Source of the DNA: Rebecca billardiae RCC1528
Lineage: Eukaryota; Protista; Haptophyta
Direction: 5' to 3'
Length of the DNA: 64,000 nucleotides
Assembly: GCA_965240325.2 (NCBI GenBank)
Contig: OZ251237.1
Location: forward strand, 1-64,000
A program made the translations under genes and the position numbers. The notes under the pieces were generated by a model. That model was not told where the DNA came from and ran no database searches. It saw only the letters and a program-made list of their open reading frames with translations. Positions 3,811 to 61,027 of this stretch are shown here, in pieces (positions within the stretch are counted from its first letter, which is position 1; the number at the start of each line of letters is the position of its first letter).

Positions 3811-5277
3811 TCATCCCATCGTAGACCACGGCAGCACGCGCGGCAGCGACGCGACTCGCTCCGGCGGCGTGCAGCGTCGGTTGCCATCTGCCACACGACT
3901 CCGCCTCTGGCCGAGGCCGAGCGCTGCGGACTGCTCGCCGCACGCGTACACGCCACCGTCAGCGGTCGCATAGAGCGAGTGGGAAGCGGCGAGCGCGCAG
4001 TCGAGCACGCGGGCGTGCGCGAGCTCGGGCACTCGCTCAGGCAGGCGAGCCTGCGCTCCCAGGCCGAGTTGCGGATGATTCGTGTGCCCGAAGACGTGCA
4101 CGCTGCCGTCCGCTCCGAGCACAGCGCTGCTGTAGTCGCCGGCACGGGAGCGCATGGCGCAGGCGCCAGCGAGCGCCTCGATGCGCCTCGGCGTGTGCTG
4201 ATTGTCCTCGGAGCCGATGCCGAGTTGGCCGAAAGCGCCACTCCCAAACGAGTGCACGCGCCCAGCTGCGTCCACCACCAGGCTGTGCTCAGCGCCCGCG
4301 CTCACATGCACGGCGAGCACGCCCGCGAGCGCCTCGATGCGCCTCGGCGTGTGCTGATGCTGGTGGTTGCCGTGGCCGAGCCGGCCCATGTAGCCATGGC
4401 CAAACGAGTAGACGTCACCAACGGTCGAGAGCAGCAGCGTGTGAGCCCACCCTGCCGACATCCCACCCACTTGCACGCCGTCCAGCGCCTCGATGCGCGT
4501 CGGCTCCCACCGGTGCTCCGTGTCGCCGTGGCCGAGCTGGCCGTAGCCGTTGTTGCCCCAGCTGTACGCGCAGCCCGCGGCGGTGAGCGCGAGGCTGTGG
4601 TAGGCGCCGACACAGATGTGCACGACGAGCTCGTCGCGAAGGGACTCAATCGATTCGAACGACCGACGCGTCGCAATGCCGCCCAGCCCGAGCTGGCCGT
4701 GCCCGTTCTTGCCGCAGCCGTACACGGCGCCGGAGTCGCTCAGCGCGAGCAGGTGGTACTCGCCTGCTGCCACGGAGCGCACGCGCACTGCGCAGAGCGA
4801 GGCGACGCGCTGGGGCGTGCATATCGGCACGGTGGCCAATGCGGGATGCCCAAGTGCTGCCGGCGTGCGAGGCTCGCCCGTCAAGAGCTCCTTCTCCTCG
4901 CCGCACGTGTGCAGCGCGCCCTCCGCGTCCACAAACGCGCTCCAGCTGCTGTTGTAGCCGCTCGCGCACGCGATGACGCTGGCGTGCGCGGCGGCGATCG
5001 TCGCCACGCGGTCACGTGCGAAGAGCTCCTCGAGCCACGTGCACGACGCCGCGGGCAGCGTCCCGGGCAGCGCGTGCTCGTGGCCGCGCGCGCGTGCGCG
5101 CTCGCGCAGCGCGTGCTCGACCGCCGAGCTGGCGCAGCCGGGCGCGCCGCGGAAGAGGCGCGAGGCGGCATTCGCGGCGGCCAGATCGCGCGCGCGCTCG
5201 AGAAAGCCGAGCACGCGCGCGAGCAGCTCGGGCGGCAGCGCGCAGATCGTGGCGCCTGTCGCGGGGCGTGATGCCAT
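3811..5277 (-). CDS. F-box + RCC1-repeat protein (UVR8/HERC-like beta-propeller), paralogue 1
   Basis: F-box-like ICALPPELLARVLGFLERARDLAAA followed by repeated GxxGQLGHG...P..I..L....V..VSAGxxHSL units. Start placed at ATG 5277. Confidence 0.85.
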   Translation of the reverse strand: MASRPATGATICALPPELLARVLGFLERARDLAAANAASRLFRGAPGCASSAVEHALRERARARGHEHALPGTLPAASCTWLEELFARDRVATIAAAHASVIACASGYNSSWSAFVDAEGALHTCGEEKELLTGEPRTPAALGHPALATVPICTPQRVASLCAVRVRSVAAGEYHLLALSDSGAVYGCGKNGHGQLGLGGIATRRSFESIESLRDELVVHICVGAYHSLALTAAGCAYSWGNNGYGQLGHGDTEHRWEPTRIEALDGVQVGGMSAGWAHTLLLSTVGDVYSFGHGYMGRLGHGNHQHQHTPRRIEALAGVLAVHVSAGAEHSLVVDAAGRVHSFGSGAFGQLGIGSEDNQHTPRRIEALAGACAMRSRAGDYSSAVLGADGSVHVFGHTNHPQLGLGAQARLPERVPELAHARVLDCALAASHSLYATADGGVYACGEQSAALGLGQRRSRVADGNRRCTPPERVASLPRVLPWSTMG

Positions 5278-5464
5278 CACGCGGCGGCGCTCTCTCGCGC
5301 GCGGTCCTGGCTCCCTCCGCCTCGGCGGCGGGGCTGCTCGGTCCGGGGTGTTCAACTGGACGGACGAAGACCGTTTGGCCACGGCCAGTTGGCCGGGCGC
5401 CGCTCCAGTGGGGTGGCGGCCAAGCCAAGGCGTGAGCGACGGTGGCGGAGGGACGGCGGTCGAG

Positions 5465-6997
5465 ATGGCAAGCGCCGCTGCATTGCCGCGGCTCACGCTC
5501 GCCGACGTGGCGCCGGAGCTGATCGAGCGCATCCTCGCCTGGCTCCCCGCCGCGCGAGACCTCGCGAGCGCCAACGCCGCCTCGCGCCTCTTCCGCGGCG
5601 CGTCCGGCCGCGCCAGCTCGCCGGTCGAGCGCGTGCTGCGCGAGCGCTCGCGCGCGCGCGGGCACGAGCGCGCGCTTCCCGAGGCGCTGCTTGCGGCGTC
5701 GTGCACCTGGATCGGCGAGCTGCTCGCGCGCGAGCACGTCTTCCAGCTCGCGCTTGCGCACGCGCAGGTGGTGGCTTGCGGGGGCTTCATTTGCGATTTA
5801 TACGGGGTCGATCTATACGAGGCTTTCGAAGCGGTGAGCGCGTTCGTGGACGCAGAGGGCGGGCTGCACACGTGCGGCGTGGAAGAGCGGCCGGGGCGCC
5901 CTCCTCGCGCGCCGTGTGCGCTGGGCCACGGCGATGAGCGCCTTGAGCCGATGCACACGCCGACGTGCGTCGCGTCGCTCTCTGCGGTGCGCGTGGTCGC
6001 AGTAGCGGCCGGCTGGGCCCACCTGCTCGCGCTGAGCAAGGCCGGCGCCGTGTACGGCTGCGGCCGCAACTACCGCGGCGAGCTCGGGCTGGGCGACGGC
6101 AAGGCTCGATTCTCCTTCGCTTCGATCGCAGTACCTCGTGACGCGCTGGTCGTGGGCATCGCCGCTGGCGGCGAGCACAGCCTCGCGCTCACCGCCGCTG
6201 GCTGCGCGTACAGCTGGGGCAGCAACAGCTACGGCCAGCTCGGACACGGCGACACGAAGGACCGGTGGGAGCCGACGCGCATCGAGGCTCTGGACGACGT
6301 GCGCGCGGGTGGGGTGTCGGCAGGGTATGCCCACACGCTGCTGCTCCCGACTGATGGTGACGTCTACTCGTGCGGTGAGGGCAGCGGCGGCCAGCTCGGC
6401 CACGGCGACCAGCGTGATCAGCACACGCCGACGCGGATCGAGGCGCTTGCAGCCGTGCGCACCGTGCACGTGAGCGCGGGCTTACAGCACAGCCTGGTGG
6501 TGGACACGGTGGGGCGCGTGCACTCGTTCGGTCACGGCCACGTCGGACAGCTCGGCCATGGCTCTACACGTGGGCAGCTCCTGCCTACGCCCATCGCCGC
6601 ACTCGGCGGCGTGCGCGCTGTGAGTGCCAGCGCGGGGCCTGCTGGCAGCGCGGTGCTGGGCGCCGACGGCAGCGTGCACACGTTCGGGGAGAACGGGTAC
6701 GCGCAGCTCGGTCGCCCAGCGTCGGCAGACCCCCGCGTGCCGGTGCGTGTGGAGCTGCTGGGTGGGCAGCACGTGGCCGCCTGTGCGCTCTCGCACAGCC
6801 ACGCGCTGTACGTGACGGCCGACGGCTGCGTGCACGCGTGCGGCCATGGCTCTGCCGCCGTCGGCCGCAGGGTGGGGCCGCCGCCGGCAGCATCCGGAGA
6901 GGGCGACGGTGCTCGGCACGCGCCGATGGTGCGCATCGCGGGGCTGCCTCGCGTGCCCGTGCGCAGCGATGATGACGGTGGTGGCTTGCCGGGCTGA
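5465..6997 (+). CDS. F-box + RCC1-repeat protein, paralogue 2
   Basis: [25 protein letters not shown] plus RCC1 repeats. Colinear with the minus-strand paralogue; for example [15 protein letters not shown] is shared. Confidence 0.85.
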
Positions 6998-7158: not shown

Positions 7159-7305
<147 letters not shown>

Positions 7306-7961
7306 ACTTCTAACTACTGTCTAACTATCAGTGTCAGTCAGTGACGGCGTCACTGTTCGGACCGACTATATAACTCACAGCGCAGGATCGCCCGCCAGCC
7401 AGTACCGTAAGCATTTTCGGCGGACCCATTAAAAAATGCGTTAACTGCCGACCCGGCTCCCTCGCGAGCCGTTGGGTCGGCCGGTGGGCCGGCCGGCCGA
7501 CACCAAGATCGGGTTTGACGGAGGTGTGAAATGCGGCTCTTCGCGCGGCGCGGCGTCGCGAGCTCGCGGCGGCCTTGCGCCGATAGGCTCGGCTGGGCCG
7601 CGTCCGCGCGTGTGGATCACCTGCCTGATGCGTTCCCCCGCCTTTGCGGCGCTGCGCAGGCATCGCTCCGTCGCATCCCTCGTCCACCTGCACATCGTTT
7701 GCGCGGGCCGCCGCCGTTTCCAGACCAGGTGCGTGCAAAGCAGCGCGTAGCGCCGAGCCCAGTGGGGGAGCGCGTCTGGCGAATAAGTGGCGATGGAGGG
7801 GTTCGGAGTGCAGATGCCCGAAACCCGCATCACGTATCCTGCATCCGACGTTTTGACCATGCGCGCGCGCCCCGTCTGCTGCCTGCACGCGTGCGGCTGC
7901 GTCGCCCGCCACCGCCGCTCGCCGCGCGCGCAGAGCAACGTCGAAGACGAAGGTCGGGAAG

Positions 7962-8852
7962 ATGGGCAAGCGTGGTGCGCAGCTGCACAAGAACCGTGAC
8001 TCGATGTATCTTCACCCGTACACGAAGCAGATCCGGCAGCAGAGCGTGCTCGCGCGCGAGAAGCGCAACCTTGTCGAGCTGGCGCACGAGGCACTCGAGG
8101 CCGCGTGGGAGGCGACGCGCGCGGCTGGCAGCGCTCTCAAGGCGGCGATGGACGCGCTGCGCGCCGTGCTGCTCGCCCTCGGCTTGATCTCGTGCAGCTC
8201 CGCCCTCTTCGTCGCGCAGGTGCGCAACGCAGTGTGGTTCATGTGCGGCTCGCGGCGCGGCTCGGATGCACGGGCCTGGGGGCGCAAGCGGCTCGAGCCC
8301 TTCCCGCACGAGGCGCTCTACGCGCCCGAGATCGTCGCGCTCGGCCCTGTGGAGGTGGTGGCGCAGAAGGAGCGCACGGTGCGCACCATCGCCTGCAGCA
8401 TCCTCCCCAGGATCTCCGCCTTGCTCAACTTCGACGCGCGCGGCGTGCGCGCGGCCGGCGGCGCGCGGCAAACAAAATTGGGGTCGATCAACGCGGTCGT
8501 CTCGCTCAAGCTCACGCACACGCAGTGGCACAAGGCGTGCGCGCTCGGGCACCCCCGCGAGTACATCGACGTCGAGGCGGTGCTCGCGCGCGTCAACACC
8601 TCCGGCGCCGTGTTCGCGCCGAACGTGCAGCCCGCCGACCGCGAGCTCGTCGCGCGCTACCTGCGCACGCAGCCGCTCGTGTTTGAGCAGCGCGGCAAGG
8701 ACTTCTCCGAGGAGATGATGGAGGCGTGCGCGGAGATGATCGCGATGGCGCGCGAGGAGGGCCGCGACGAGGCGGAGGCGGCGGCGGCGACGACGGCGGC
8801 AGTCGCAGCGGCGCCGCCCCCCGCGGGCCCGCCTGCCGCACTCCGCTTATGA
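7962..8852 (+). CDS. Transposon ORF1, 296-aa protein of unknown function
   Basis: Open frame with strong GC3 codon bias inside the TIRs. Its stop TGA (8850-8852) overlaps the transposase ATG (8849-8851). Confidence 0.65.
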   Translation: MGKRGAQLHKNRDSMYLHPYTKQIRQQSVLAREKRNLVELAHEALEAAWEATRAAGSALKAAMDALRAVLLALGLISCSSALFVAQVRNAVWFMCGSRRGSDARAWGRKRLEPFPHEALYAPEIVALGPVEVVAQKERTVRTIACSILPRISALLNFDARGVRAAGGARQTKLGSINAVVSLKLTHTQWHKACALGHPREYIDVEAVLARVNTSGAVFAPNVQPADRELVARYLRTQPLVFEQRGKDFSEEMMEACAEMIAMAREEGRDEAEAAAATTAAVAAAPPPAGPPAALRL

Positions 8853-11800
8853 CATCGGTCTCCGCGGAGACCGAGGCGGCTGAGCAGCGACGCGCCGGCG
8901 CGCCCGCGCCGCCGCTGATCGCGGCGGGGCGCGCCGCGCCCGCGCCCGCGCCAGCCGCCCAGATCGAATCCTCGAAGCGGAGGCGGCTCGACGGCTCGCA
9001 CGACGGTGGCGCAACCTGCGCTGCCCCGCATGACGCAGCTGCCCGCGCGGCAGCTGCCGACACCTCGTGCCCGCCGCCCGAGCCCGCCTCCATGCCACCA
9101 CCACCGCCGCCGCCTCGCGCGGACGGCGCCCCGCCCTCGTCACCTGTCGACCCTCACCCCTCCACCGCCCTGCTGCCCGTGCAAGCCGCCGCTCAAGGCC
9201 CGCCGGCCGCGGTCGTCGTCGGCACGCCGATCGCTCGCCCCAACCGCCGCGCATCGCCCGCCGCCCGCACGCCCGCCGCCCGCACGCCCGCGCAGCCGCG
9301 CTCGACGCGCCGCACGCCGCTCTCGGCGGCGAGCACCGTGGCCGCGGACGGCAGCGCCGACGTGCTCGCGGCGCGCGTTGCCGAGCTGGCCGATGAGAAC
9401 GCGCGCATGAGCCACGAGCTGGCCCGGCTTCGCTGGGCCGATACTCAGCGCCAGCGCCTCGCCGACCGCGTGCGCGAGCTCGAGGCCACCAACGAGAGTC
9501 TCGTCGCGGACAAGGCCGACCTCGAGAACCTCCTCGCGCGCTCGCGCGCGCCCGGCGCTGTGCGCAGCCTCGAGCAGCAGCTGAGCGCTGCGCGCGCCGC
9601 CGCAGCAGAACGCGCGGCGGCGGCCGACGAGACGGTGGCGGCGCTCGAGGCGCGACTCGCTGCGGCCGAGGCCGGGCAGCGCGCAGCCTCCGCCGACGCC
9701 GCCGCGAGCAGGGCTGGTCGGCAGGCTGCTGAGCTCGCCCTCGCTGCTGCTGCTCAGCGTGAGGCGAGCGCGAGCGCGGCCGAGCGCGCGGCCGCGCTCG
9801 CGGCCGCGCGCGCGGAGGTCTCTGAGGAGCTCGGGCGGCTCCAAACGGACCTGGCCAAGGCGCGTGTGGCGACCGGTGCGGAGCACGGGAACGCCTCGCA
9901 GGCGCGCGCGCGGCTCGTGCGCGCGTGTGCAGAGCTCGAGGCCGCACGCTCCGCGCATGCGGTCGAGCTGGCGGCTTCGAATCAGCGCGCGGCGGCGGCG
10001 GAGGCGGCGGCGGCGGAGGCGGCAGCGGCGGCGGCGCACGAGCAGCGAGCAGCCGCGTCATCCCGTCAGCAGGTGCAGAAGCTCGACGGCGAGGTGACGC
10101 GTCTGCGCGGGCAGCTCGCACACGCGCAGCAGCAGGTCTCTGCTGCCCACGCGCCGCTCGCGACTCGGCACCGCTCTGACCGCCCCAACCCGGAGAGGCG
10201 ACGGCAGCGCCAGATCATTCACGCGCAGAACACGCTCAGGGAGGTGTGCGGGGGTGACGCCGAGCTGATCGCGGAGACGGCCGTGAGAGCGTTCCAGTCG
10301 TACGGCGCGGCGCGCGCGATCGCAGCGCACGTCTACGGCATCAAGCACGCTGCTGTCAAGTCCACGATCGACTTCTTCCAGTTCGAGGTCTTTGCGGCGC
10401 GCCGGCTCGCGGACTTCTTCTCGATCTCCAAGGTGTCCGGCCGCCTCTGGGACTGGCAGCGCGAGTTCATCTTCCGCCGCTACGACCCGGCCACCGCGGA
10501 GAACGGGCTGCTGACCGTGCTCAAGGGCGAGCACGGGCTCGCCACGCTCCGCCTCAAGCCGTACGTGAGCGCGGCGGGCATCAAGTCGCTCAACGAGAAG
10601 GAGGCGGCTGAGAACGGCCTCTCGATCGCGTACACGGAGAACGGCCGCGTCGCGTCCGTGGACACGGTGGCGGCGGCGCACAACGTGCTCCGGGCGTGCG
10701 ACAAGAAGGGTGCGTGCGCGCGGCCGACAGGCGCGCCGCGGCTCCTCGTCGGCTCGAGCGACGCGGGCACCGTCGCCAACAAGGGCAAGCAGCGCGACTG
10801 GACGTCGCTCTGCCTGCGCTGCGCGCACCGCTGCGACGGCAACTGCTGTCCATCGGCGGTGCAGCCGGTCGGCCAGGCGGCCTACTCCGACAAGAACTCG
10901 GGCCTCAGCGCCGGCTGGGCGCCGCACGTGCCGCTCTTCGACTTCATCGCGCGCTACGGTCTGCTGCCGTGCTGCGTCGCCCGCCTCGACGTCGCGCTCC
11001 ACCTCGACATCTGCCCCGTGCCCGACGCGCCTGCGCAGCGCGCGCGCAGCTCGGCCGCGGCCGCGGCCGCGCCCGCCCCGGCCGCGGCCGCGGCGCCCGC
11101 GCCCGCGCCCGCTGCGCCCACAGTGCCGGCCGGCGCCCTACCCGATGCCTTCAAGTGCGGCTGCGAGCACCCGGGGTTCGAGCCGTGCGACTTCGTGTAC
11201 ACCGGTGACCTCGCCAACCTCGTCGGGATGATGGGCCTCGGCTCGCACCGCACCGACCCGGCCAAGTACTCGATCCACAAGGTGAAGCTCGACGACGGCA
11301 CATGGGCGTGGCGCACGGTCGCCGACGCGATGCTCTACTCGCACTCGCTCGTCGGCAAGCGGTGCCCGTGCGGGTGGATCAACCACTCGGACGACGACGT
11401 GGAGGGCGAGCGCGACCGCCGCATCCACATGCCCTCCGGCCAGGCCAAGTCGGACGAGCTGCACGTGCATAAGAACTACTGGCTGCGGCCCGTGTTGTGG
11501 GTCGAGTTCGACCACTACCTGCTAGGCGTGATGCACTTCTGCCACAACACCTTCGACCAGTGGTTCGGGGCGGTGTGGAAGGATGTGGACACGCTGCACG
11601 AGGGCGACGCGAACTTCGTCAAGTACGATTTGGTCGCGGCGCTGGTGAGCATGGGCGTCACCTGCCTCAAGCCGGCCCGGCGCGACGGCAACGAGGTCGC
11701 CGTGCCATCGTTCAAGGGCGCGGACCTCTCGCTGATGCGCACCGAGCTCGGCATGCTGATGGCGCTGCAGATCGTGTACGGGGTCGCGGACTTCTTCGAC

Positions 11801-12568
11801 GGCGAGGGCGAGGGCGAGGCGGGCGGCAGCGACGGCGCGATTGCAGCCTCGGCCGCTAACGTCGAGGCAGTCGAGCACCTCGAGGCGCAGATGAGGGAGC
11901 GACGGCGGCTGCGCGGCGGCAGCAGCTCGAACGCGCAAGCCGCCGCACGCGCCGCGCGCGAGCCGGCTCTGCGGCGCGCGTGTGCGGCGCTGATGGCGTT
12001 GTGGGAGGTGCAGCGCCTGGTGAAGGACACGAGCTACGACGACTCGACCGAGCAGTCCCGCCGCGCGCACGCCGCCGCCTACCGCACGGCCTTCGAGGAC
12101 TTCGTCACCAAGCTCAAGGCGATGACGAGCAAGGACGTGCAGTCGCAGTACATAACGGAGGGGCTCGAGGTGATGCCCGACCTGATCGAGCGGTGGGGCA
12201 AGGTGGTGGCGTACGTGAACGAGCAGGTGCAGGAGCACATGGTGAAGCTGACGAAGGACTTCGCTCGCCGCGCGAGTGACCACTCCATCGAGCTCGGCTC
12301 GTACGTCGCCCACCTCGCGAGCGGTGCCAGCATCACGCGCAACCGTCGCTCCACTGCTGTCGGCCAGGTGCTCCGACGGCAGTGCGATGCGCTGTGCGCA
12401 CTCGAGCGCGCGGCGCAGACCAACAAGACGGCGCATCAGAAGCTGGCCGGCTCGAAGCGCCACATCGCGCACGAGGACAAGCCGGCGGTCACGCTCGAGG
12501 CTGACTGCGACCAGCTGTGGGAGGATCTCAAAAAGCAGCCCAAACCGTCGGGCCGGGGCGCGGACTGA
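8849..12568 (+). CDS. RAG1/Transib-like DDE transposase (1239 aa from ATG 8849) with Pro-rich N-terminus and long coiled coil
   Basis: Ordered motifs LVGSSDAG (D at 10760), FVYTGDLANLVGMMGL (D at 11207), RPVLWVEFDHYLLGVMHF, FKGADL and YITEGLEVMPDLIERWGKVVAYVNEQVQEHMVK (E at 12233). These parallel RAG1 core ESCDG, GTGYDEKLVREVEGL, KPF..SIDALH, MNGNF and [32 protein letters not shown]. Confidence 0.8.
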   Translation: MTSVSAETEAAEQRRAGAPAPPLIAAGRAAPAPAPAAQIESSKRRRLDGSHDGGATCAAPHDAAARAAAADTSCPPPEPASMPPPPPPPRADGAPPSSPVDPHPSTALLPVQAAAQGPPAAVVVGTPIARPNRRASPAARTPAARTPAQPRSTRRTPLSAASTVAADGSADVLAARVAELADENARMSHELARLRWADTQRQRLADRVRELEATNESLVADKADLENLLARSRAPGAVRSLEQQLSAARAAAAERAAAADETVAALEARLAAAEAGQRAASADAAASRAGRQAAELALAAAAQREASASAAERAAALAAARAEVSEELGRLQTDLAKARVATGAEHGNASQARARLVRACAELEAARSAHAVELAASNQRAAAAEAAAAEAAAAAAHEQRAAASSRQQVQKLDGEVTRLRGQLAHAQQQVSAAHAPLATRHRSDRPNPERRRQRQIIHAQNTLREVCGGDAELIAETAVRAFQSYGAARAIAAHVYGIKHAAVKSTIDFFQFEVFAARRLADFFSISKVSGRLWDWQREFIFRRYDPATAENGLLTVLKGEHGLATLRLKPYVSAAGIKSLNEKEAAENGLSIAYTENGRVASVDTVAAAHNVLRACDKKGACARPTGAPRLLVGSSDAGTVANKGKQRDWTSLCLRCAHRCDGNCCPSAVQPVGQAAYSDKNSGLSAGWAPHVPLFDFIARYGLLPCCVARLDVALHLDICPVPDAPAQRARSSAAAAAAPAPAAAAAPAPAPAAPTVPAGALPDAFKCGCEHPGFEPCDFVYTGDLANLVGMMGLGSHRTDPAKYSIHKVKLDDGTWAWRTVADAMLYSHSLVGKRCPCGWINHSDDDVEGERDRRIHMPSGQAKSDELHVHKNYWLRPVLWVEFDHYLLGVMHFCHNTFDQWFGAVWKDVDTLHEGDANFVKYDLVAALVSMGVTCLKPARRDGNEVAVPSFKGADLSLMRTELGMLMALQIVYGVADFFDGEGEGEAGGSDGAIAASAANVEAVEHLEAQMRERRRLRGGSSSNAQAAARAAREPALRRACAALMALWEVQRLVKDTSYDDSTEQSRRAHAAAYRTAFEDFVTKLKAMTSKDVQSQYITEGLEVMPDLIERWGKVVAYVNEQVQEHMVKLTKDFARRASDHSIELGSYVAHLASGASITRNRRSTAVGQVLRRQCDALCALERAAQTNKTAHQKLAGSKRHIAHEDKPAVTLEADCDQLWEDLKKQPKPSGRGAD

Positions 12569-13441
12569 CGAGTCACGGTCGCGCGGCGCCGCGGCCGCTC
12601 CGATCCGCGGCGGCGGAGACAGCATGCTGATGATGATCGATATGATGATAAGCGAGGCGCTGTATGACGCACGCATGCCTGGCGATATACCGCCGCCAGC
12701 CAACCAGGAGACCATCAATAACGCTGGTCGAGTCTGTGAGTGGTAGCACACAAGCCACGCCGCGACCGGGCGGCCGGCGAGCACGATCGTCTCCCGTCTT
12801 CGATCTGCTTTCTCGCACGCGGCGCGGGGTGTCGCGGGGCCTGCTGCTCGGAGTAGCAACGTGCTGAGGAGTGCTGATGAGTGTCAAATCGAGTGCACGC
12901 GCACTTTCGGCTGCCGCGCCGGCCTCGTCTCCGAGGAAGAAAGGAGTACTGTGCACATCCATAAAAAATGGTCAGCACGGGCGCTCGAGCCGCCCGAGCG
13001 GCACGCGACCTCAACTGCACCTGTCCCGATCTCGAGCTGTGGGCAGGGCGGGGTGGCTTGGATCGATGGGGAGACGCTCGGGGAAAATCGCCGGGGTAGT
13101 CTGCGACTGCGCGCGCACGCTCCCCGCCCTTCCGCGCGTCGCGCGCCGCCATGCTGAATTTCCGCGAGCGGGCGCGTGCTGGGGGGGGCCCGTAACGACA
13201 TCTTTCCTGAAATCTTGCGCTGTGCTATAAGATGCATGCGAGTTACCGAGCTGACGTATACTTCAGGCTCAGCTGAGCCTGTCTCATCGTCGACCGGCGG
13301 ATCGAGTGTGATCGACGAGTGGATAGTCGATAGACGGCGTGAGGCGGTGATGCCATTCTCACTCAGATTCTGACGACGGACACGGTCATCATATAACATA
13401 TTGGCTATTGCTCCCAGTGGCCCGCTGATATCATTCATTTG

Positions 13442-14509
13442 TCAGAGAGGCCACCGTGCCGTGGCGGAGTCCGGCGACTCCACGACCAACCGCGAGAGCA
13501 CCGCCGCCTTCTCGCGCTCAAACGCGTGCGCGGTCGGGACGGGCCCGAACGAGACGCAGTAGACGTGCATCATCTGGCCGCCGCCGTGGCCGAGCAGCGT
13601 GCGCTTCGCAGCCATCATGATGATGGCGGCGACCAGGTCGGGCGGGAAGCGGCGCGCGCCGGTGGAGATCGCCGGGATCGCCAGCGAGGTTGCGCCGCGC
13701 TCGAGCGCCGCCTCAAACACGCGCTCGACCAGCCTCGCCTGCTCGTGCAGCTTCTGCACGCGCTCGCTGCCGTTCTGGTACGCGCCAAACCAGTTGATGC
13801 CGACGCAGTGCGCGAGCCACTTGGCCTTGAGCGTGCCAAAGGACGGCGTGACGACCACCTCGCCCGCCTGGACGACCGCCGCGCCAGCCGCGCCGTGCCG
13901 GCTCACGTGGCGGTACTCCCTGCGGATGTGCGCGACGAGCGCCGGGCCGGCCGCGCGGTACACGGCCTGCAGAGCGCCGAAGCCCGGGTTCTCCAGCCAC
14001 TCGTTGGACGGGACGGCGATCACGTCCACGGGCATCGGCAGCTGCGAGATGTCCGCCTCGATGACGTGCAGGTGTGCGCGCAGCTGCTCGCGCACCGCGT
14101 GCAGCCGGGCAAAGTTGGGCAACCCCCCGGAGAGAGAGAGCGTTGGCGTCGCGCCGAGCGCGAGCCACACTGCGCCGTCCACGCCGCCGCTCTCCGCGCC
14201 GCCGCTCGTGTCGGGCTCGTCCTCGAGGGAGGCTCGCGACATGAGGTCCGACAGGTCACTGGACGAGGATGCATGCTCCGAGCCGCGCTCGCGTGATGCG
14301 CTCTCGCCGTGTGCAAACTCGACCGCCGCGAGAGCATCCCACATGCTGTCGGCCGCCCGCACCACGTGGGCGCATGTGCTGGACGTGCGCATGAGCTGGA
14401 CGAGTGAGGGGGCGCTGAGCATGCCGAGCACGTGCTTCAGCAGCTCGTCGGGAAGCGCGGTGATGATGCACAGACCTGGATCCACGCAGGACCGAGCGTG
14501 GAGGTCCAT
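13442..14509 (-). CDS. F-box + Macro (ADP-ribose-binding) domain protein
   Basis: F-box ITALPDELLKHVLGMLSAPSL. Macro motifs LHVIEADIS, DVIAVPSN, AVYRAAG, GEVVVTPS..LKAKWLAHCVG and SLAIPAISTGARRFP. Confidence 0.85.
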   Translation of the reverse strand: MDLHARSCVDPGLCIITALPDELLKHVLGMLSAPSLVQLMRTSSTCAHVVRAADSMWDALAAVEFAHGESASRERGSEHASSSSDLSDLMSRASLEDEPDTSGGAESGGVDGAVWLALGATPTLSLSGGLPNFARLHAVREQLRAHLHVIEADISQLPMPVDVIAVPSNEWLENPGFGALQAVYRAAGPALVAHIRREYRHVSRHGAAGAAVVQAGEVVVTPSFGTLKAKWLAHCVGINWFGAYQNGSERVQKLHEQARLVERVFEAALERGATSLAIPAISTGARRFPPDLVAAIIMMAAKRTLLGHGGGQMMHVYCVSFGPVPTAHAFEREKAAVLSRLVVESPDSATARWPL

Positions 14510-14615: not shown

Positions 14616-16792
14616 CTAGGGAGGTCCGGGCCGGGCGGGGGAGCTCCCAGAGTGCACTCGAGCGAAAACGTGCCAGGCTAGGCATGCGCGGCCCAGTGCG
14701 GGCTAGGCATCGGGGGCGATGCCTAGCCCGGCCAGGCTAGGCATTCGCCCATACCCTCGCGTCGTCAGAACTTTCGGAAACGAAAGTCGCGCAAAGGCGG
14801 CCCCGGTCTTCTTTCACGGCGGCGCAAGGGGCGCGGGGGCGCTGGCTCGCGACCCGAAGGGCAGTCGCTCGCGACCTCGCTTGGGCGGCGGCAGCGGCGC
14901 TGCGGCATCCTGTTTGCCACGCGCGCGGCTGTGTGCGATCGCGCGGTCCCGTTCGTCGCCACGCCGCGCGCGACCGTTCACGGCACAGTCTTTCCGCACT
15001 GTGAGCACCCCTTGCCAGCGCACGGCGGCGGAGAGCCCAGACAGCCCGTCACTCGCGCGACGTCCTTGTGGGATGCGATGTACTCACCCTAATGCTAGCA
15101 TGCGCCTGCGTTTTGGTGAGCCTGTTCAGCATCCAGACCACTCTCTACTGCTGCAAGATGAGTCATCGTCTGCCAATCGGTCAACGAGTCATGGACAGCG
15201 CAGCAGTCGTCCATGATCCTCTTGCCCACCCCGTGGGCAAGCGCATGCCTCCGGGAACCCAAAGAACCTGGGTACATCGCATCCCACAAGGACGTCGCGC
15301 GCGTGACGGGCTGTCTGGGCTCTCCGCCGCCGTGCGCTGGCAAGGGGTGCTCACAGTGCGGAAAGACTGTGCCGTGAACGGTCGCGCGCGGCGTGGCGAC
15401 GAACGGGACCGCGCGATCGCACACAGCCGCGCGCGTGGCAAACAGGATGCCGCAGCGCCGCTGCCGCCGCCCAAGCGAGGTCGCGAGCGACTGCCCTTCG
15501 GGTCGCGAGCCAGCGCCCCCGCGCCCCTTGCGCCGCCGTGAAAGAAGACCGGGGCCGCCTTTGCGCGACTTTCGTTTCCGAAAGTTCTGACGACGCGAGG
15601 GTATGGGCGAATGCCTAGCCTGGCCGGGCTAGGCATCGCCCCCGATGCCTAGCCCGCACTGGGCCGCGCATGCCTAGCCTGGCACGTTTTCGCTCGAGTG
15701 CACTCTCCCAGCGAGCGGCCAGCGCGACATCACTCCGAAGTTTTCCCTGAGCGCCGGGCGGCGGCGGCGGCGAGGGCGAGTGCTCCGCTGGCGGGGCGCG
15801 CACGGGGCACGGCGCAGCGGGCGCGGATGTGCCCGCAGAGCCGGCGCGTGCGGACGGGCTGTTGCGGGAGAGCATCTGGCGCCCTCCTGCGCCGCGCGTC
15901 TTGCGCCACGCCTCTTTCGCCTCGGCTCGGGGCAGCGCGCACGTGTGCGCCGCCTCAAGGCCAGCCTTGCCGCGCCGCAGCCGACCGCGCGCGCGCCGTG
16001 CGCGGCGTGGTCGGGAAGGAACGGGCGCTGCTGCCGGGCGAGATGGCGACACCATACGCGCACGCCATGCCGCCCCGCGATGCCGCGACAGGGCACGGCA
16101 ATAGATCTGCACAGCTGTTGACGAGTGCTGATCGCTTGTCGTGCCAAGCCAGAACTGAGCTCGAAGAAGATGATGAAAGAGCACCAGCGCGAGGAAAGCG
16201 TCGCATTCCGCACTTCTACATGACCACGCAGTGATGAACATCCACGCACTGGAGTAGCCCGCGTGCCCGTCTGGCACTGTTCTGCGTCTCAATGATCGTC
16301 CCGACAAGGGTCACTACCGCGAGGCCGTGCACGCCATTTGTGACAAGTCAAAGAGGCATGCAAACGGACCGACGACACGGTCGTCAAGGCGTGGCGGGGC
16401 GGCATGGCGTGCGCGTATGGTGTCGCCATCTCGCCCGGCAGCAGCGCCCGTTCCTTCCCGACCACGCCGCGCACGGCGCGCGCGCGGTCGGCTGCGGCGC
16501 GGCAAGGCTGGCCTTGAGGCGGCGCACACGTGCGCGCTGCCCCGAGCCGAGGCGAAAGAGGCGTGGCGCAAGACGCGCGGCGCAGGAGGGCGCCAGATGC
16601 TCTCCCGCAACAGCCCGTCCGCACGCGCCGGCTCTGCGGGCACATCCGCGCCCGCTGCGCCGTGCCCCGTGCGCGCCCCGCCAGCGGAGCACTCGCCCTC
16701 GCCGCCGCCGCCGCCCGGCGCTCAGGGAAAACTTCGGAGTGATGTCAGAGCGCTGGCCGCTCGCTGGGAGCTCCCGGCCCGGACCTCCCTTG
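14616..16792. mobile_element. Non-autonomous foldback element, P/Galileo-like (outer element; about 1.1 kb without the insert)
   Basis: 7-bp TSD GTACTTC (14609-14615; 16793-16799). Ends CTAGGGAGG and CCTCCCTTG. About 400-bp inverted arms (14616-14649 plus 15711-16078, versus 16394-16792) around a 315-bp spacer. Confidence 0.8.
14650..15705. mobile_element. Non-autonomous foldback element nested in the left arm of the outer element
   Basis: 434-bp near-perfect inverted arms (14650-15083; 15272-15705) with a 188-bp spacer. GAG...CTC termini. TSD TCCCA (14645-14649; 15706-15710). Confidence 0.88.
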
Positions 16793-16960: not shown

Positions 16961-17395
16961 ATGACGATTGCGCTGGAAGACATCGTGCAGGTCAAGTACA
17001 TCGACCGCGATGGGAAGAAGTTCGATAAGGTCTCCCGGCTGGAATGCAAGAGCGAGAACTACGAGATGGAGCTGGTGCTCGACGTGAACACCGACCTGTA
17101 CCCGGTCAAGCTGAACGACAAGCTGTCCCTCGCGCTGGCGACGTCGCTCCAAGAAGGTGTGCCCGACTCGGGCACGTACGACCCGCAGCCCGGGCCCTCC
17201 CTCCTCGACCAGTACGAGTACGCCATGTACGGCAAGGTGTACAAGTGGGTCGAGGAGAAGGACAAGGCGCCCAACGCGGTCGTGAGCGTGTATGTGTCGT
17301 TTGGGGGATTGCTGATGATGATCAAGGGTGATCCACGGCACCTCAAGGACCTGGAACCAGAGGGCCGGATCTACCTGCTCATCAGGAAGGTCTAA
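16961..17395 (+). CDS. RPB8: DNA-directed RNA polymerases I/II/III subunit RPABC3
   Basis: KKFDKVSRL, LDVNTDLYP, YEYAMYGKVY and YVSFGGLLM signature motifs; 144 aa. Confidence 0.97.
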   Translation: MTIALEDIVQVKYIDRDGKKFDKVSRLECKSENYEMELVLDVNTDLYPVKLNDKLSLALATSLQEGVPDSGTYDPQPGPSLLDQYEYAMYGKVYKWVEEKDKAPNAVVSVYVSFGGLLMMIKGDPRHLKDLEPEGRIYLLIRKV

Positions 17396-26990: not shown

Positions 26991-27891
26991 GCGCTTGGCG
27001 CGCGCGCGGCGCGGCGCGCTGCGGCCGTCGAGTTGCCGTGCGAAGGCGGCGCGTTGCTTGCGTGGCATCGGAACACGACCATGCTCCGCACTGCGCCCCG
27101 CAGCTCGCTCCTCGTCGACTTTGCCGCGCCTACGATCAGCGCGCATGCGAGCGTCGCGTCGGAATGAGCAGCCCGCGCCGGCCTCAGCCGTGAGCGCCCG
27201 CCTGGCGCGCGATGCGATCAACTCGGGGCACGAGCTGCGGCTGGGCGAGGAAGCATGTGCCTGCGCGCAAGCCGCGCCGCGTTGAGACACCGATCGTGAG
27301 CAGGGCATGCACCTTGCACGCAACGTTTCTTCTTGCCCTTGCGAATGTCGCGGTGCCCTTGAAAGGACTCCTCATCAGCGCAACTACTCAAGCATGGCAT
27401 GACGGCAGCCACGCGCGCAGGCGATGCATGAATGTACACGAGTCCCTGCACGCACACGCAACCCGAAGACTCCTATTCATCGCTTCAGGGCGCTCACGGT
27501 CTGTTGTTTCATCTCCACTGCATGCAAGGCTCGTGCAGGCTGATCGGCATTCGTTGACAGCCGTCTGAAGCTGCATCAACGCGCACGATCGATGTCTCAA
27601 CGCGGCGCGGCTTGCGCGCAGGCACATGTTTCCTCGCTCAGCCGCAGCTCGTGCCCCGAGTTGATCGCATCACGCGCCAGGCGGGCGCTCACGGCTGAGG
27701 CCGGCGCGGGCTGCTCATTCCGACGCGACGCTCGCATGCGCGCTGATCGTAGGCGCGGCAAAGTCGACGAGGAGCGAGCTGCGGGGCGCAGTGCGGAGCA
27801 TGGTCGTGTTCCGATGCCACGCAAGCAACGCGCCGCCTTCGCACGGCAACTCGACGGCCGCAGCGCGCCGCGCCGCGCGCGCGCCAAGCGC
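26991..27891. mobile_element. Foldback MITE, 901 bp, 308-bp TIRs, 3-bp TSD CCA
   Basis: Inverted arms 26991-27298 and 27584-27891 with few mismatches and a 285-bp spacer. CCA at 26988-26990 and 27892-27894. Confidence 0.82.
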
Positions 27892-47023: not shown

Positions 47024-48931
47024 TCACTGCACGCGCTGGCGCTTGGCCGCACGCTCGTCCGCAAAATCGACGGCAAGCGTCTCCATCAGCTCGAACGCCT
47101 CCGCCGGGTCGTCGCGCTTGAAGGCCGACCACTGCTCCTGCTTCACGATCACAGCGATCTGCTCCTTCGCCAGCTTGCGCACGCCCTCCACCACACGCGC
47201 GCACCCGCCCGCTGCCTTGGCGTGCCGCAGCAGGTCGAGGCAGTTGTCCACGTCCAGCCCGGCGAGCAGCACGTCCTCGCACCGCTGCACGACGCCGAGC
47301 AGCACGTCGCCCTCCGCACGAGCGCGCGTGCCCTCCGAGTCTTCAGCGGGTGGCGGCTGCAGCTTGCTCGTCAGCCGCAGCAGCTCGAGCAGCACCGACG
47401 GCTCGGTCGGCAGCGGCGCCACGCCCGCCGAGTGCAGCTGGCGCAGCAGCGCCTCGTGCGCCGCCGAGCTGAAGTCCGGGTCGGCGTCCACCTCGCGCTG
47501 GCTGCCCTCAGACAGGCTGCCGCACAGCTGGCGCGCGTAGTACTGCGAGTGCTGCGCCAGCAGCAGCCGGCTCGCGCCCAGCTCGGTGCCGTCCGCGCAC
47601 CGCAGCACCACGTCGTGCTGCCGCGAGGGCTCGCCCACCGCGTCGCCCAGCGAGCACAGCCGCGCGTGCGCGCCGCGCAGCTCCGCATCGCTGTCGGACA
47701 GTCGCACGTGCGTTTCGCCCGCAGAGGCTAGCGCACGCCGACGCACATCCACGCTGCCGCACAGCAGAACCTCGAGGGCGCCCAGCGCGTGCTGCCGAGC
47801 CTCGCGAGCGCTCGCACCGCCGTCGGCATCACCCTCCACAGCAGCGCAGCTGTGCACCAGGCCTTGCAGCGCGCTGACCAGACCTGGCGTGCCGGCAATG
47901 GCAGCGCGCTGCGCGGTGCAGTGGGTGACGATGGTGCACACGGTGACAGCGGCATGCGCTGCGATCTCGCGTGATGCAGCCGAGCCGTCACGCACGCGCA
48001 GCAGCGGCACGAGGGCGTCACACCCGCAGTCAGCAATGAGCGCGGCGCGGCACTGCTCAGCCGCTTCCGTGCAGCGGCGGATGACGTTGGCTGCGTTGCG
48101 GACCACGTCGACGTTGGCCGAGCACAGCTGCGACGCGAGCTCGGGAATGGCGCCCGCCCCCGCAATCCGCGCGCACAGTGCGGAGCCAGTGGCGAGCCAG
48201 CTCAGCGTGCGTGTTGCTCCAAGGTGCACGCCCTCATTGGCCGATCTCAGCAGCGGCACGAGCGCCGTGATGGCGCCGGCCTCGGCGATCGGCGCGCGTA
48301 GCGAGTCTGCAACGCCGAGCCAGCCGAGCGCACCTGCCGCCTGGCGCTGCAGATCCTCGTTGGCCGAGCGCACCAGCGTCACGAGCGCAGGAATGGCGCC
48401 AGCCTCGGCGATCTGTGTGCGCAGCGTGTCGGTCTGGCCGAGCCAGCTGAGAGCCCATGCCGCCTCGCACTGCACGCCCTCATCGGCCGAGCGCAGCAGC
48501 GGCACGAGCCCCGGGATGGCGCCAGCCTCGGCGATCGGTGCGCGCAACACGTCCGTGTGGCCGAGCCAGCTGAGAGCCACTGCCGCAGGGCGCTGCACGA
48601 CCACATTGGCCGATCGCAGCAGCGGCACGAGCGGTGGAATGGCCCCAGCGTCCGCGAGCGCACTGCGCAAGTCCGGATGCACGCCGAGGCCCGCCACGGC
48701 ACGCGCCGCGGCGGCCTGCACGCCGGCAGTGCGATCGGGCGCGAGGAGCTGCACCAGCTCCGGCAGAGCCCGCGAGCCAATGATCACTCCCGCGTCAACG
48801 TCCTTCTCGCCATACTGGGCGCCAAACGGCTCGAGCGCGACGATCAGAGTCTGTGCTCTCGGCTTCTTGGGGCGCATGGCCTTGACCAGCTTTGCAATCG
48901 CCTCCTGCCCGACCGGCGTGATGGTGGCCAT
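47024..48931 (-). CDS. Armadillo-repeat + BTB/POZ protein, tandem copy 1
   Basis: 41-aa repeats AEAGAIPALVxLLRSA. BTB segment HDVVLRCADG.EL.ASRLLLAQHSQYY. Confidence 0.88.
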   Translation of the reverse strand: MATITPVGQEAIAKLVKAMRPKKPRAQTLIVALEPFGAQYGEKDVDAGVIIGSRALPELVQLLAPDRTAGVQAAAARAVAGLGVHPDLRSALADAGAIPPLVPLLRSANVVVQRPAAVALSWLGHTDVLRAPIAEAGAIPGLVPLLRSADEGVQCEAAWALSWLGQTDTLRTQIAEAGAIPALVTLVRSANEDLQRQAAGALGWLGVADSLRAPIAEAGAITALVPLLRSANEGVHLGATRTLSWLATGSALCARIAGAGAIPELASQLCSANVDVVRNAANVIRRCTEAAEQCRAALIADCGCDALVPLLRVRDGSAASREIAAHAAVTVCTIVTHCTAQRAAIAGTPGLVSALQGLVHSCAAVEGDADGGASAREARQHALGALEVLLCGSVDVRRRALASAGETHVRLSDSDAELRGAHARLCSLGDAVGEPSRQHDVVLRCADGTELGASRLLLAQHSQYYARQLCGSLSEGSQREVDADPDFSSAAHEALLRQLHSAGVAPLPTEPSVLLELLRLTSKLQPPPAEDSEGTRARAEGDVLLGVVQRCEDVLLAGLDVDNCLDLLRHAKAAGGCARVVEGVRKLAKEQIAVIVKQEQWSAFKRDDPAEAFELMETLAVDFADERAAKRQRVQ

Positions 48932-49178
48932 CGCAGCCACGCTGGCGTGAGTTCGGCGCGCAGTTGCGAGGCTCCGTCGTTGGGCCGTGTCCGGTCGTTC
49001 AGTTGGCGAGCGCTCCGGACTCCGAGGCGAAATTGCATGACCGCGTAGTACTAGTACTTCAATAGCATCGTCAGTCGTTTCAGTGTCACTGATCTCCGGA
49101 GAAGCAAACTAGCTAGTTACTGTGTGACAGTACTCAGTCACTCAGTCGTAGTCCGCCACGCGATTGGCAGTGACTCAC

Positions 49179-51350
49179 TCACTGCACGCGCTGGCGCTTG
49201 GCCGACGAGAGCTGCGTGGCCATGTCCACGGCCAGTGCCTCCAACAGCTCACACGCCTCCGCCGGGTCGTCGCGCTTGAACGCCGACCACTGCTCCTGCT
49301 TCACGATCACAGCGATCTGCTCCTTCGCCAGCTTGCGCACGCTCTGCACCACACGCGCGCACCCGCCCGCCGCCTTGGCGTGCCGCAGCAGGTCGAGGCA
49401 GTTGTCCACGTCCAGCCCGGCGAGCAGCACGTCCTCGCACCGCTGCACGACGCCGAGCAGCACGTCGCCCTCCGCACGAGCGCGCGTGCCCTCCGAGTCT
49501 TCAGCGGGTGGCGGCTGCAGCTTGCTCGCCAGCCGCAGCAGCTCGAGCAGCACTGACGGCTCGGTCGGCAGCGGCGCCACGCCCGCCGAGTGCAGCTGGC
49601 GCAGCAGCGCCTCGTGCGCCGCCGAGCTGAAGTCCGGGTCGGCGTCCACCTCGCGCTGGCTGCCCTCAGACAGGCTGCCGCACAGCTGGCGCGCGTAGTA
49701 CTGCGAGTGCTGCGCCAGCAGCAGCCGGCTCGCGCCCAGCTCGGTGCCGTCCGCGCACCGCAGCACCACGTCGTGCTGCCGCGAGGGCTCGCCCACCGCG
49801 TCGCCCAGCGAGCACAGCCGCGCGTGCGCGCCGCGCAGCTCCGCATCGCTGTCGGTCAGTCGCACGTGCGTCTCGCCCGCAGAGGCTAGCGCACGCCGAC
49901 GCACATCCACGCTGCCGCACAGCAGAACCTCGAGGGCGCCCAGCGCGTGCTGCCGAGCCTCGCGAGCGCTCGCGCCGCCGTCGGCATCGCCCTCCACAGC
50001 AGCGCAGCTGTGCACCAGGCCTTGCAGCGCGCTGACCAGACCGGGAGTGCCGGCGATGGCATCGCGCTGCATGGTGCATTGGGTGACGATGGTGCGCACG
50101 GTGGCCGCGGCATGCGCTGCGTTGTGGCGTGATGCGGCCGAGCCGTCACGCACGCGCAGCAGCGGCACGAGAGCGTCGCACCCGCCGTCAGCAATGAGCG
50201 CGGCGCGGCACCGCTTACTCGCTTCCGTGCAGCGGCGGATGGCGGTGGCTGCGCTGCGGACCACGTCGACGTTGGCCGAGGGCAGCAGCGACGCGAGCTC
50301 TGGAATGGCGCCCGCCTCCGCAATCTGTGCGCACAGTGCGGAGCCAGAGGCGAGCCAGCTCAGCGCACGTGTTGCTTCAAGGTGCACGCCCTCATTGGCC
50401 GAGCTCAGCAGCGGCACGAGCGCCGGGATGGCGCCGGCCTCGGCGATCGGCGTGCGCAGCGCATCCGTATGGCCGAGCCAGCTGAGCTCGATGGCAGCCT
50501 GGCGCTGCACGTCCTCGTTGGCTGAGACCAGCAGCGTCACGAGCGCAGGAATGGCGCCGGCCTCGGCAATCTGCGTGCGCAGCGCGTCGGTCTGGCCGAG
50601 CCAGGTGAGCGCGACTGCCGCCTCGCGCTGCACGGCCTCGTCGGCCGACCCCAGCAGCGACACGAGCGCCGGGATGGCGCCGGCGTCAGCGATCGGTGCG
50701 CGCAGCGCGTCAGCGCGGCCGAGCCAGTGCAGCGCGACTACTGCGTGACAATGCACGCCCTCGTCGGCAGAGCTCAGCAGCGACACTAGCGCCGGGATGG
50801 CCCCGGCCTCAGCGATCTGTGTGCGCAGCGCTTCCGTAGGGCAGAGCCACTTGAGAGCAATCGCCGCCTCGCGCTGCAGGTCCTCGTCGGCCGATTGCAG
50901 CAGCGTCACGAGCGCCGCAATGGCGTTAGTCTCGGCGATCTGCGAGCGCAGCGCGTCGGCACGGCAGAGCCAGCCGAGAGCCGCTGCCGCCTCGCGCTGC
51001 ACGGCCTCGTCGGCCGACCCCAGCAGCGACACGAGCGCAAGGATGGCGCCAGCGTCCGCGAGCGCACCGCGCAGGTCCTTGTGCACCGCGAGGCTCGTCA
51101 CGGCGTGCGCCGCGGCGATGTGCACGTCGGCAGCGCGATCCGGCGCCAGGAGGCGCACCAGCTCCGGCAGCGCCTGTGCGCGAATGATCGCGCCCGCGTC
51201 GATGTCCTTCTCGGCGCACGCGCCAAAGGGCTCGAGCGCCGCGACCAGTTTGCGCGTCTTCTGCTTCTTGGCGCGCAGTACCTTGACCAGCTTGGCGATC
51301 GCCTCGTGGCGAAGGGGCGTTGTTGGCGAGCAAAACGTCTCGTCCGTCAT
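49179..51350 (-). CDS. Armadillo-repeat + BTB/POZ protein, tandem copy 2
   Basis: Same architecture with two more ARM units. C-terminal ~290 aa nearly identical to copy 1. Confidence 0.88.
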   Translation of the reverse strand: MTDETFCSPTTPLRHEAIAKLVKVLRAKKQKTRKLVAALEPFGACAEKDIDAGAIIRAQALPELVRLLAPDRAADVHIAAAHAVTSLAVHKDLRGALADAGAILALVSLLGSADEAVQREAAAALGWLCRADALRSQIAETNAIAALVTLLQSADEDLQREAAIALKWLCPTEALRTQIAEAGAIPALVSLLSSADEGVHCHAVVALHWLGRADALRAPIADAGAIPALVSLLGSADEAVQREAAVALTWLGQTDALRTQIAEAGAIPALVTLLVSANEDVQRQAAIELSWLGHTDALRTPIAEAGAIPALVPLLSSANEGVHLEATRALSWLASGSALCAQIAEAGAIPELASLLPSANVDVVRSAATAIRRCTEASKRCRAALIADGGCDALVPLLRVRDGSAASRHNAAHAAATVRTIVTQCTMQRDAIAGTPGLVSALQGLVHSCAAVEGDADGGASAREARQHALGALEVLLCGSVDVRRRALASAGETHVRLTDSDAELRGAHARLCSLGDAVGEPSRQHDVVLRCADGTELGASRLLLAQHSQYYARQLCGSLSEGSQREVDADPDFSSAAHEALLRQLHSAGVAPLPTEPSVLLELLRLASKLQPPPAEDSEGTRARAEGDVLLGVVQRCEDVLLAGLDVDNCLDLLRHAKAAGGCARVVQSVRKLAKEQIAVIVKQEQWSAFKRDDPAEACELLEALAVDMATQLSSAKRQRVQ

Positions 51351-60181: not shown

Positions 60182-61027
60182 GTGCAGAGCGGCGTACAAT
60201 GTAGAGCCAGCGGCGAGGCAGCTCAGCGCGCGTGATGCGTGCAGCTGCACGTTCGCGGTGGCGGTGCCCCCTTATCGATCAACAATGGCGGCGGCCGGAG
60301 GAATCCTGGAATCTTTCGGCGAGCTTCGTCGCCCTTCTCGGAGTCGTCCGAGTGCCCGCACGGGCAAGTCTAGGCTCTAGCACACGATGGCGCTCCGATA
60401 GTGTCTGTGATGATTGCCGCTGCGGGCTGCGCGCTGCCGCACCTGCCCGCGCACCTCAGACGTCCCGCGCGCTTGACGACAGCGAGCTGGAATGCATTCC
60501 GCGATGCTCGCGCAACCGTCAAGGCGTCGCCGTCGCAGCCTCAGGGCCACGCGCCGGCGCCGCGGTCGCGCGAGGACGTGGACGTGGACGTGAGAGTGGT
60601 CGAAAAGTCGGAAAGGAAGCTGTCACTCATGCCCACGCGCTCGTACGGCGACGGCGACCGGTGTGTGGCACGCCCCCCGGTCCCGGACGTGCCACACGCG
60701 CCTTGGATCGCGGTAGGACGGGCATTCGCGCCCTCACGGACGGCTGGACCAAGGGAGTGAGGAGTCCGTTGGCAGCTGGACCCCCCTGTAATCCGAAATG
60801 TGAAAGCGTCTCGCAGCCTGAGATTAACTTTCGCGGTTGATGGCTCATCAATCGAAGGCTTCTGAAGGAGGCAGCAATCAATACGGTTCAGACAGATTGT
60901 AGAAGACGTGTAATCTCGACGATCTTCGAGTTTAGGCGATGGCGCGTGCGATGACATGCGATGATCGTTTTCTTACCCAGCAGCGGCTGCTGGAGCGGCT
61001 TACATAGGGTTTTCAGCCACTTTTACT

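Follow-up and report, generated by a model that had tools for sequence, protein, structure and literature searches.

Probable degenerate bipartite TIRs in an algal DNA transposon lineage with a RAG1-fold transposase

The ends of an autonomous-looking DNA transposon found in the window (the whole 64-kb stretch of DNA that was analysed, eukaryotic and ~70% GC) are probably degenerate bipartite TIRs, belonging to a cut-and-paste transposon lineage that has a RAG1-fold transposase and leaves 2-bp target duplications, with the inner block putatively bound by a three-helix domain of the enzyme. Each end has CAC at its tip, then a spacer that is only loosely conserved, and farther in a same-strand CGT(A/T)A core. 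The two ends have diverged from one another, the left adding ATTTT..CGG after the core and the right keeping CAAGATTTC beside the heptamer. The closest named homologues come from Pavlovales sp. CCMP2436, which suggests a pavlovophyte alga as the source, and our literature searches turned up no account of the lineage or of its ends.

Elements A and B and the words at their ends

Element A (7376-13224, plus strand) is a two-ORF transposon with CACAGCG at both tips. It is flanked by CT at 7374-7375 and at 13225-13226 (CT|CT), so that the direct flanks match 2/2 at 2 bp, with no match at 3-6 bp; a 5-bp target duplication was ruled out for this element, as the flanks agree at only one of five positions at that length. 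Element B (56811-58736), a non-coding element of 1926 bp, carries CACAGTG at both tips and AT|AT flanks, which match 2/2 at 2 bp and 4/5 at 5 bp and are ambiguous when taken alone. The CACAGYG heptamer is not enriched in the window (32 observed vs 35.5 expected). A (TA)n tract of ~140 nt at 7161-7302 ends 73 bp before element A, and most family tips seen here sit in AT-rich flanks, whereas Transib targets are GC-rich.

Comparison of B with A revealed no internal or coding similarity (blastn gave nothing and tblastn nothing convincing), so we reject the idea that B arose from A by deletion, and only its ends can set its orientation. In global alignments evaluated against dinucleotide shuffles, the 56811 end of B matched the right end of A over positions 8-70 (z 4.4, P 0.0003) and aligned with the left end of A over the same positions at chance level (z -0.4), while the far end of B matched the left end of A over positions 8-50 (z 2.5, P 0.016) and not its right end (z -0.6). 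The A right end and the B 56811 end, which align over 70 bp, also have in common an in-register 8-mer, GGAAATTC, at positions 62-69 from the tip (13156-13163, minus strand, in A). Judged by these similarities, B probably lies reversed relative to A and its 56811 end is right-type, so the label of left end that it had been given in the initial annotation is probably wrong. Only four copies of GGAAATTC exist in the window (13156, 56872, 57714 and 57900), all within the two elements, and both copies in the interior of B come after GCCGCA; the word may represent an additional binding site or a promoter word of the host. B also harbors a 15-bp perfect inverted pair (57627-57641 and 57909-57923), with ~280 bp between its two halves, which could be a small element nested in B.

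The words on which the initial annotation was built are present as it described them. TACCGTAA occupies positions 28-35 of both the A left end and the B 56811 end (7403-7410 and 56838-56845), the 20-bp spacers before it differ (5/20 identical), and ATTTTCGG follows it at unequal distances, at positions 38-45 in A (7413) and 54-61 in B (56864). TTACGG stands at positions 30-35 of the A right end (13190-13195), and the far ends of both elements carry CGTT at 28-31 as well as GAAAGAT, the latter at 19-25 in A and 10-16 in B. TACCGTAA has exactly two copies in the 64 kb, against a chance expectation of 0.03, and shuffles gave a probability of 0.002, 0.005 or 0.012 (regions 8-40, 8-60 and 8-100, respectively) that at least one of the four cross-element end pairs shares an exact 8-mer in register. 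In B, this word is contained in a quasi-palindrome, GTTAC-C-GTAAC (10/11; 56836-56846, plus strand), the first half of which corresponds to the A right block and the second half to the A left block. The exact match between A and B thus appears to be partly coincidence, and the B end to be a right-type end with a near-palindromic inner site.

Farther inside, the B 56811 end carries ATTTTCGG and then GGAAATTC as a loose inverted pair (12/17; 56863-56879, plus strand). The far end of B (58693-58736, minus strand), with its CACAGTG tip and the GAAAGAT and CGTT words given above, aligns weakly with A left and not with A right. One base past the CACAGTG of B, at 56819-56827, lies ACAAAAACG, which matches the RSS nonamer at 8/9 positions, at the wrong distance for an RSS; it probably belongs to an A-rich block adjoining the B heptamer.

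The inner block in related families

Relatives were gathered via the transposase (42 proteins plus contigs), and their ends were taken from contigs of other samples, which are short or gapped. A sister family (L125, L126 and L127, with ~66% amino-acid identity) was recovered from three samples with different flanks, and its tips read CACGCCG and CACGGCG. The left ends of A and L125 match at 14/17 positions in their best 17-nt window (P 0.0003; whole-end z 5.3), the sister end having CCGTAAG and ATTTT..CGG as in A, shifted 2 bp toward the tip and with GT instead of TA in front. The right ends, compared in register, are identical at 9/9 positions at 8-16, 1/7 at 17-23, 10/11 at 24-34 and 2/11 at 35-45 (P 0.00015). 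An inner block lying ~20-23 bp inside the heptamer is therefore kept between A and the sister family where the spacer is not, as the initial annotation's proposal of bipartite ends had anticipated, and its observation of sequence differences between the left and the right end also holds.

In A, the left end begins with its heptamer at 7376-7382 (plus strand), of which only CAC and G7 recur across families, and continues with a poorly conserved spacer (7383-7402, plus strand) of 20 bp up to TACCGTAA and 23 bp up to the CGTAA core, 2 nt shorter in the sister family. The left inner block (7397-7423, plus strand) is composed of AGCC, CCGTAAG, ATTTT and CGG, all of them kept in the sister family, and encompasses both TACCGTAA and ATTTTCGG (7413-7420). 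At the right end (13209-13224, minus strand), the heptamer is joined by a conserved block at positions 8-16, which is placed like TR2 of ProtoRAG and matches at 9/9 positions in L125 and 8/9 in L127. The right inner block (13191-13201, minus strand, positions 24-34) has ATGTCGTTA as its core and is overlapped by the non-conserved TTACGG.

The sister family contradicts the finer points of the earlier proposal. Its CCGTAA lies at 28-33, 2 bp off that of A, which speaks against a fixed spacer, and the word TACCGTAA, put forward as a conserved second site, is present in none of the relatives' ends. The reversed hexamer CCGTAA/TTACGG is not kept either: at this place the sister right end has TTAAGA, and the two sister ends agree with each other in register without a change of strand (8/11 at 24-34, namely TGTC, two bases and TAAG; z 5.1). 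Of the positional enrichment expected in other family ends, the recurrence of CCGTAA near its position was found and that of TACCGTAA at exactly 28-35 was not. A metagenome scan for the heptamer, 20 bases of any sequence and TACCGTAA gave at least 120 matches from mixed sources; among the matches listed, two had ATTTTC downstream and two were GC-rich, and we take them as chance.

What does recur is a CGT(A/T)A core that reads on the same strand at the left and the right end and starts 28-31 from the tip, 20-23 bp after the heptamer. The left/right offsets are 23/20 in A, 21/20 in the L125 family and 23/21 or 23/23 in L124; the offset is 23 in the B 56811 end, and the B far end carries CGTTT only. 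Across the 235 CACRSYG sites of the window, CGTWA starting at 28-31 was found at only three true ends (background 0.0008-0.003 per site), this motif having been chosen after the data were seen; the core-bearing families are three and related to each other, so the independent cases are few. L124, with a protein identity of ~31-45%, carries a nearly perfect TIR of 37 bp that terminates in CGTTA (at 31 and 29). Its element, at L124:442-6400, is a complete distant relative with AT at both flanks, and in its single contig the right tip falls 2 bases short of the left one, possibly an assembly effect. The heptamer itself varies among relatives (CACGCCG, CACGGCG and CACACTG), and in one related family it is CACAATG, the Transib consensus.

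A fourth family, represented by the right ends of L122, L129, L132 and L133, does not have the CGT(A/T)A core and instead conserves AAGG..TTTT at ~33-42, a motif similar to the block at the left end of the L125 family (z 3.4). Its right tips (at L129:4021, L122:11646, L133:10989 and L132:10624) are CACAGTG, CACGGTG, CACAATG and TACAGTG, and are followed by an A-rich block. Owing to gaps, truncation or insertions, usable left ends are absent from L001, L130 and L131 and from the left sides of L122, L128, L132 and L133; a CGTAA..TTTT stretch in L122 that looks like a left block comes right after an assembly gap, with no assignable tip, and was left out of the count. L123, reached via a 56-aa cluster member, is an AT-rich, intron-rich contig in which no family end was seen. 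An assembly from the reads of run X1 (5981 letters) consisted of scattered short contigs, none listed over tips, and no relatives of the transposase were found in viral and bacterial contigs.

The sister family (L125:96-3569, L126 and L127) is a 3.5-kb internally deleted form that lacks ORF1 and the three-helix segment. Since it occurs at different flanks in three samples, it is probably mobilised in trans, and the same probably applies to B; deleted forms such as these two keep the inner blocks.

ORF1, the transposase and the recognition of the ends

ORF1 (7962-8852, plus strand) encodes 296 amino acids with no Pfam or Atlas match, and its stop overlaps the start of the transposase gene (ATGA). 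Homologues of it are located upstream of the transposase in the Pavlovales CCMP2436 copies, and tblastn of ORF1 against the upstream 296-aa ORF of L124 gave no match. The transposase (8849-12568, plus strand; 1239 aa from its ATG) contains the motifs SSDAG (10754), TGD (11201), HxxH (11531) and NEQVQE (12218), all conserved in relatives, as well as CPCG (CPxxC in relatives) and MHFCH, the spacing of which is not canonical compared with C(2)C and H(3-4)H. It matched no Pfam family or PDB sequence, and its likeness to the Transib/RAG1 core is by fold only. Its core model (mean pLDDT 74.5) had RAG1 as its best match (Foldseek E 1e-6), with a structural Z of 14.4 over 405 residues at an rmsd of 6.6; BbRAGL scored Z 14.1 and HzTransib Z 9.2. 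We found no RAG2-like gene, and ORF1 is the upstream gene on the same strand.

Three predicted helices, the first of them basic (10190-10390, plus strand), lie directly before the part of the transposase that aligns to RAG1 from residue 459 onward, and we regard them, with moderate confidence, as a candidate equivalent of the RAG1 nonamer-binding domain (NBD). The best Foldseek matches of the N-terminal model (E 0.002-0.02) were RAG1 chains with the NBD, covering the entire model over 300-330 columns, compared with ~125-140 for most chains without it. A VIA alignment placed residues 16-281 of the model on RAG1 398-689 at an rmsd of 13.5, and the structural alignment of the three-helix region to RAG1 398-459 is weak, with a pLDDT of 55-75 in that region, a best E of 0.002 and an rmsd above 13. 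In sequence databases and Pfam this region had no match, and the Atlas search gave only matches below 0.9. As the modelled transposase matches RAG1 and the helices sit at the place of the NBD, binding of a second site by the transposase is plausible. The analogy to the RSS nonamer made in the initial annotation survives in part, in that a predicted helical segment is placed like the NBD, with an inner motif unlike the one proposed.

Under the bipartite model, a transposase dimer would bind and cut at the CAC tips with its RAG1-like catalytic core, while the three-helix domain would hold the inner block two helical turns in. Holding of the end at two such sites would constrain the spacing roughly (20-23 bp) and make it almost equal at the two ends, like that of most Transib families; a left end might at most be favored as the partner of a right end, as in ProtoRAG. 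A further contact could be made at the right end by its conserved 8-16 block, in the manner of ProtoRAG TR2.

Conservation of the inner block may instead reflect ORF1 binding or descent. En/Spm TnpA binds En/Spm subterminal repeats, and by analogy the ends might carry CACTA-type subterminal words (GTTAC/GTAAC, GAAA-AT and GAAATTC) bound by the ORF1 product in either orientation and at variable distance, with no strict spacer. The two-ORF layout would suit such a scheme, as would the two inverted word pairs of the B end, the halves of which are split between the A left and right ends, the variable distances of GAAAGAT and ATTTTCGG, and the confinement of GGAAATTC to elements A and B, twice inside B. 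We nonetheless consider it unlikely, given that the words do not form many-copy arrays, each having one or two copies per end, that three families keep the core within 28-31 and on one strand, and that ORF1 belongs to no recognisable DNA-binding family and has no detected homologue in L124, which keeps the core. Quite unlikely, too, is that the words in common were merely left over from a shared ancestor, with chance matches of AT-rich words added to them against a background of 70% GC, and that nothing beyond the outer ~16 bp is important, as proposed for invertebrate RAGL. It is true that ProtoRAG cleavage needs just the first 16-17 bp (PMC7204232), that the left-labelled ends of A and B align over 8-70 no better than chance, and that one family has no core; yet blocks are kept while the bases between them are not (P 0.00015-0.0003), a pattern that neutral decay would not predict.

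The 12/23-like pairing rule suggested in the initial annotation, in which only an end with a short spacer and an end one helical turn longer react with each other, fits the heptamers, which equal CACAGTG or are one base off it, the sequence difference between left and right ends, and the predicted RAG1 fold with its NBD-like segment, and 12/23 ends are known from some Transib families (PMC1131882). We consider it highly improbable all the same. The left-right offsets differ by 1-3 bp and never by ~11, which argues strongly against it; no end has the shared inner block at position 20; neither an A-rich nonamer nor a RAG2-like gene was found; and the reversed hexamer is unconserved and would misfit the geometry of the nonamer, which keeps one orientation relative to the heptamer. 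Degenerate bipartite TIRs remain the reading that we favor. A stronger version of it, namely that a branch of the CMCT clade outside animals, with 2-bp duplications and an inner motif of its own, uses RSS-type two-site recognition (a heptamer and a second site gripped by an NBD-like domain) and, like ProtoRAG, needs one left and one right end (23/20), is a tentative possibility that we hold to be rather doubtful.

Comparison with known systems and neighboring features of the window

In Transib TIRs, the heptamer is separated from an A-rich block by ~23 bp of variable spacer, and a few families are of the 12/23 type (Kapitonov and Jurka 2005, PMC1131882), and symmetric spacers of 20-22 bp are their common form (PMC8355894). 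The ends described here resemble them in having a CAC heptamer, a variable spacer of ~20-23 bp and a second block ending near 35-38, in being mostly symmetric, in going with a RAG1-fold transposase, and in the Transib consensus tip of one related family. They differ in the inner block, which is AAAAAAATC in Transib and CGT(A/T)A here, in the target duplication (5 bp in Transib, 2 bp here), and in accompanying two ORFs and a 1239-aa enzyme with no sequence-level match to Transib or RAG1.

The TIRs of ProtoRAG (BbeRAGL) comprise TR1-TR5, with an inner block that is unlike the nonamer and matters for precise cleavage, and with spacers of 27 and 31 bp (PMC8289069). Here too, a heptamer is followed by a conserved adjoining block and by an inner block unlike the nonamer, and the left and right ends are no longer alike in sequence, their spacers being unequal by a few bases (27/31 in ProtoRAG, 23/20 in element A). 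The algal spacers are shorter, however, the motif is another one, and RAGL/ProtoRAG elements have convergent RAG1L and RAG2L genes and a 5-bp duplication, neither of which is found in element A. A preference for a particular pair of ends has been demonstrated for ProtoRAG; a left-right preference in the algal element would be an analogy to it.

As for V(D)J RSS12/RSS23, the likeness consists of the CACAG(T/C)G heptamer, the enzyme fold and the candidate NBD-like helices. CAC starts all four ends in the window and nearly all ends of the relatives. Positions 30-38, in contrast, read CCGTAAGCA and CCGTAACCC, with 4/9 and 5/9 matches to the nonamer, of which only the AA at 34-35 coincides with key nonamer positions, and nothing similar lies at 12; an A-rich nonamer at 12 or 23, the 11-bp asymmetry and RAG2 are missing, and the heptamer varies among relatives.

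The 2-bp target duplications set the lineage apart from both Transib and RAGL. [quoted passage not shown] By its 5'-CA..TG-3' termini and a duplication length within 2-5 bp, the lineage appears to belong in this clade, with Transib/ProtoRAG-like bipartite ends and a new inner motif, though its transposase matches no Pfam family, its motif spacing is slightly off C(2)C and H(3-4)H, and subterminal repeat arrays like those of EnSpm/CACTA are absent. Read in this way, the bipartite end design of Transib and ProtoRAG would extend to an algal lineage with 2-bp duplications and a different inner motif, which could serve as an outgroup in dating the origin of the nonamer and of the domain that binds it, and element A offers an intact-looking pair of enzyme and ends that is open to assay. 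Were RSS-type two-site recognition to hold for this CMCT branch, the heptamer-spacer-second-site design would predate the Transib/RAG split. A new origin for the 12/23 rule is not supplied, as such asymmetry is absent here and some Transib families were already known to have ends of the 12/23 type.

A promoter and terminator scan of the window came back empty, such a scan not being informative for a eukaryote. Domain matches identified host genes for an F-box plus macro domain protein (13442-14509, minus strand), RNA polymerase Rpb8 (16961-17395, plus strand), part of topoisomerase II (54578-56590, plus strand) and a membrane transport protein (58784-60250, minus strand). A long diverged inverted repeat at 4211-6564 has ORFs on both strands that match RCC1 repeats, one of which also matches an F-box-like domain. 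Three fold-back elements (14649-15706, 15726-16746 and 26991-27891) have arms of 438, 364 and 311 nt, respectively, that are 98-100% complementary, the first two elements being adjacent, and a tandem duplication at 47067-51034, with a period of 2158 bp, contains 123-bp repeats.
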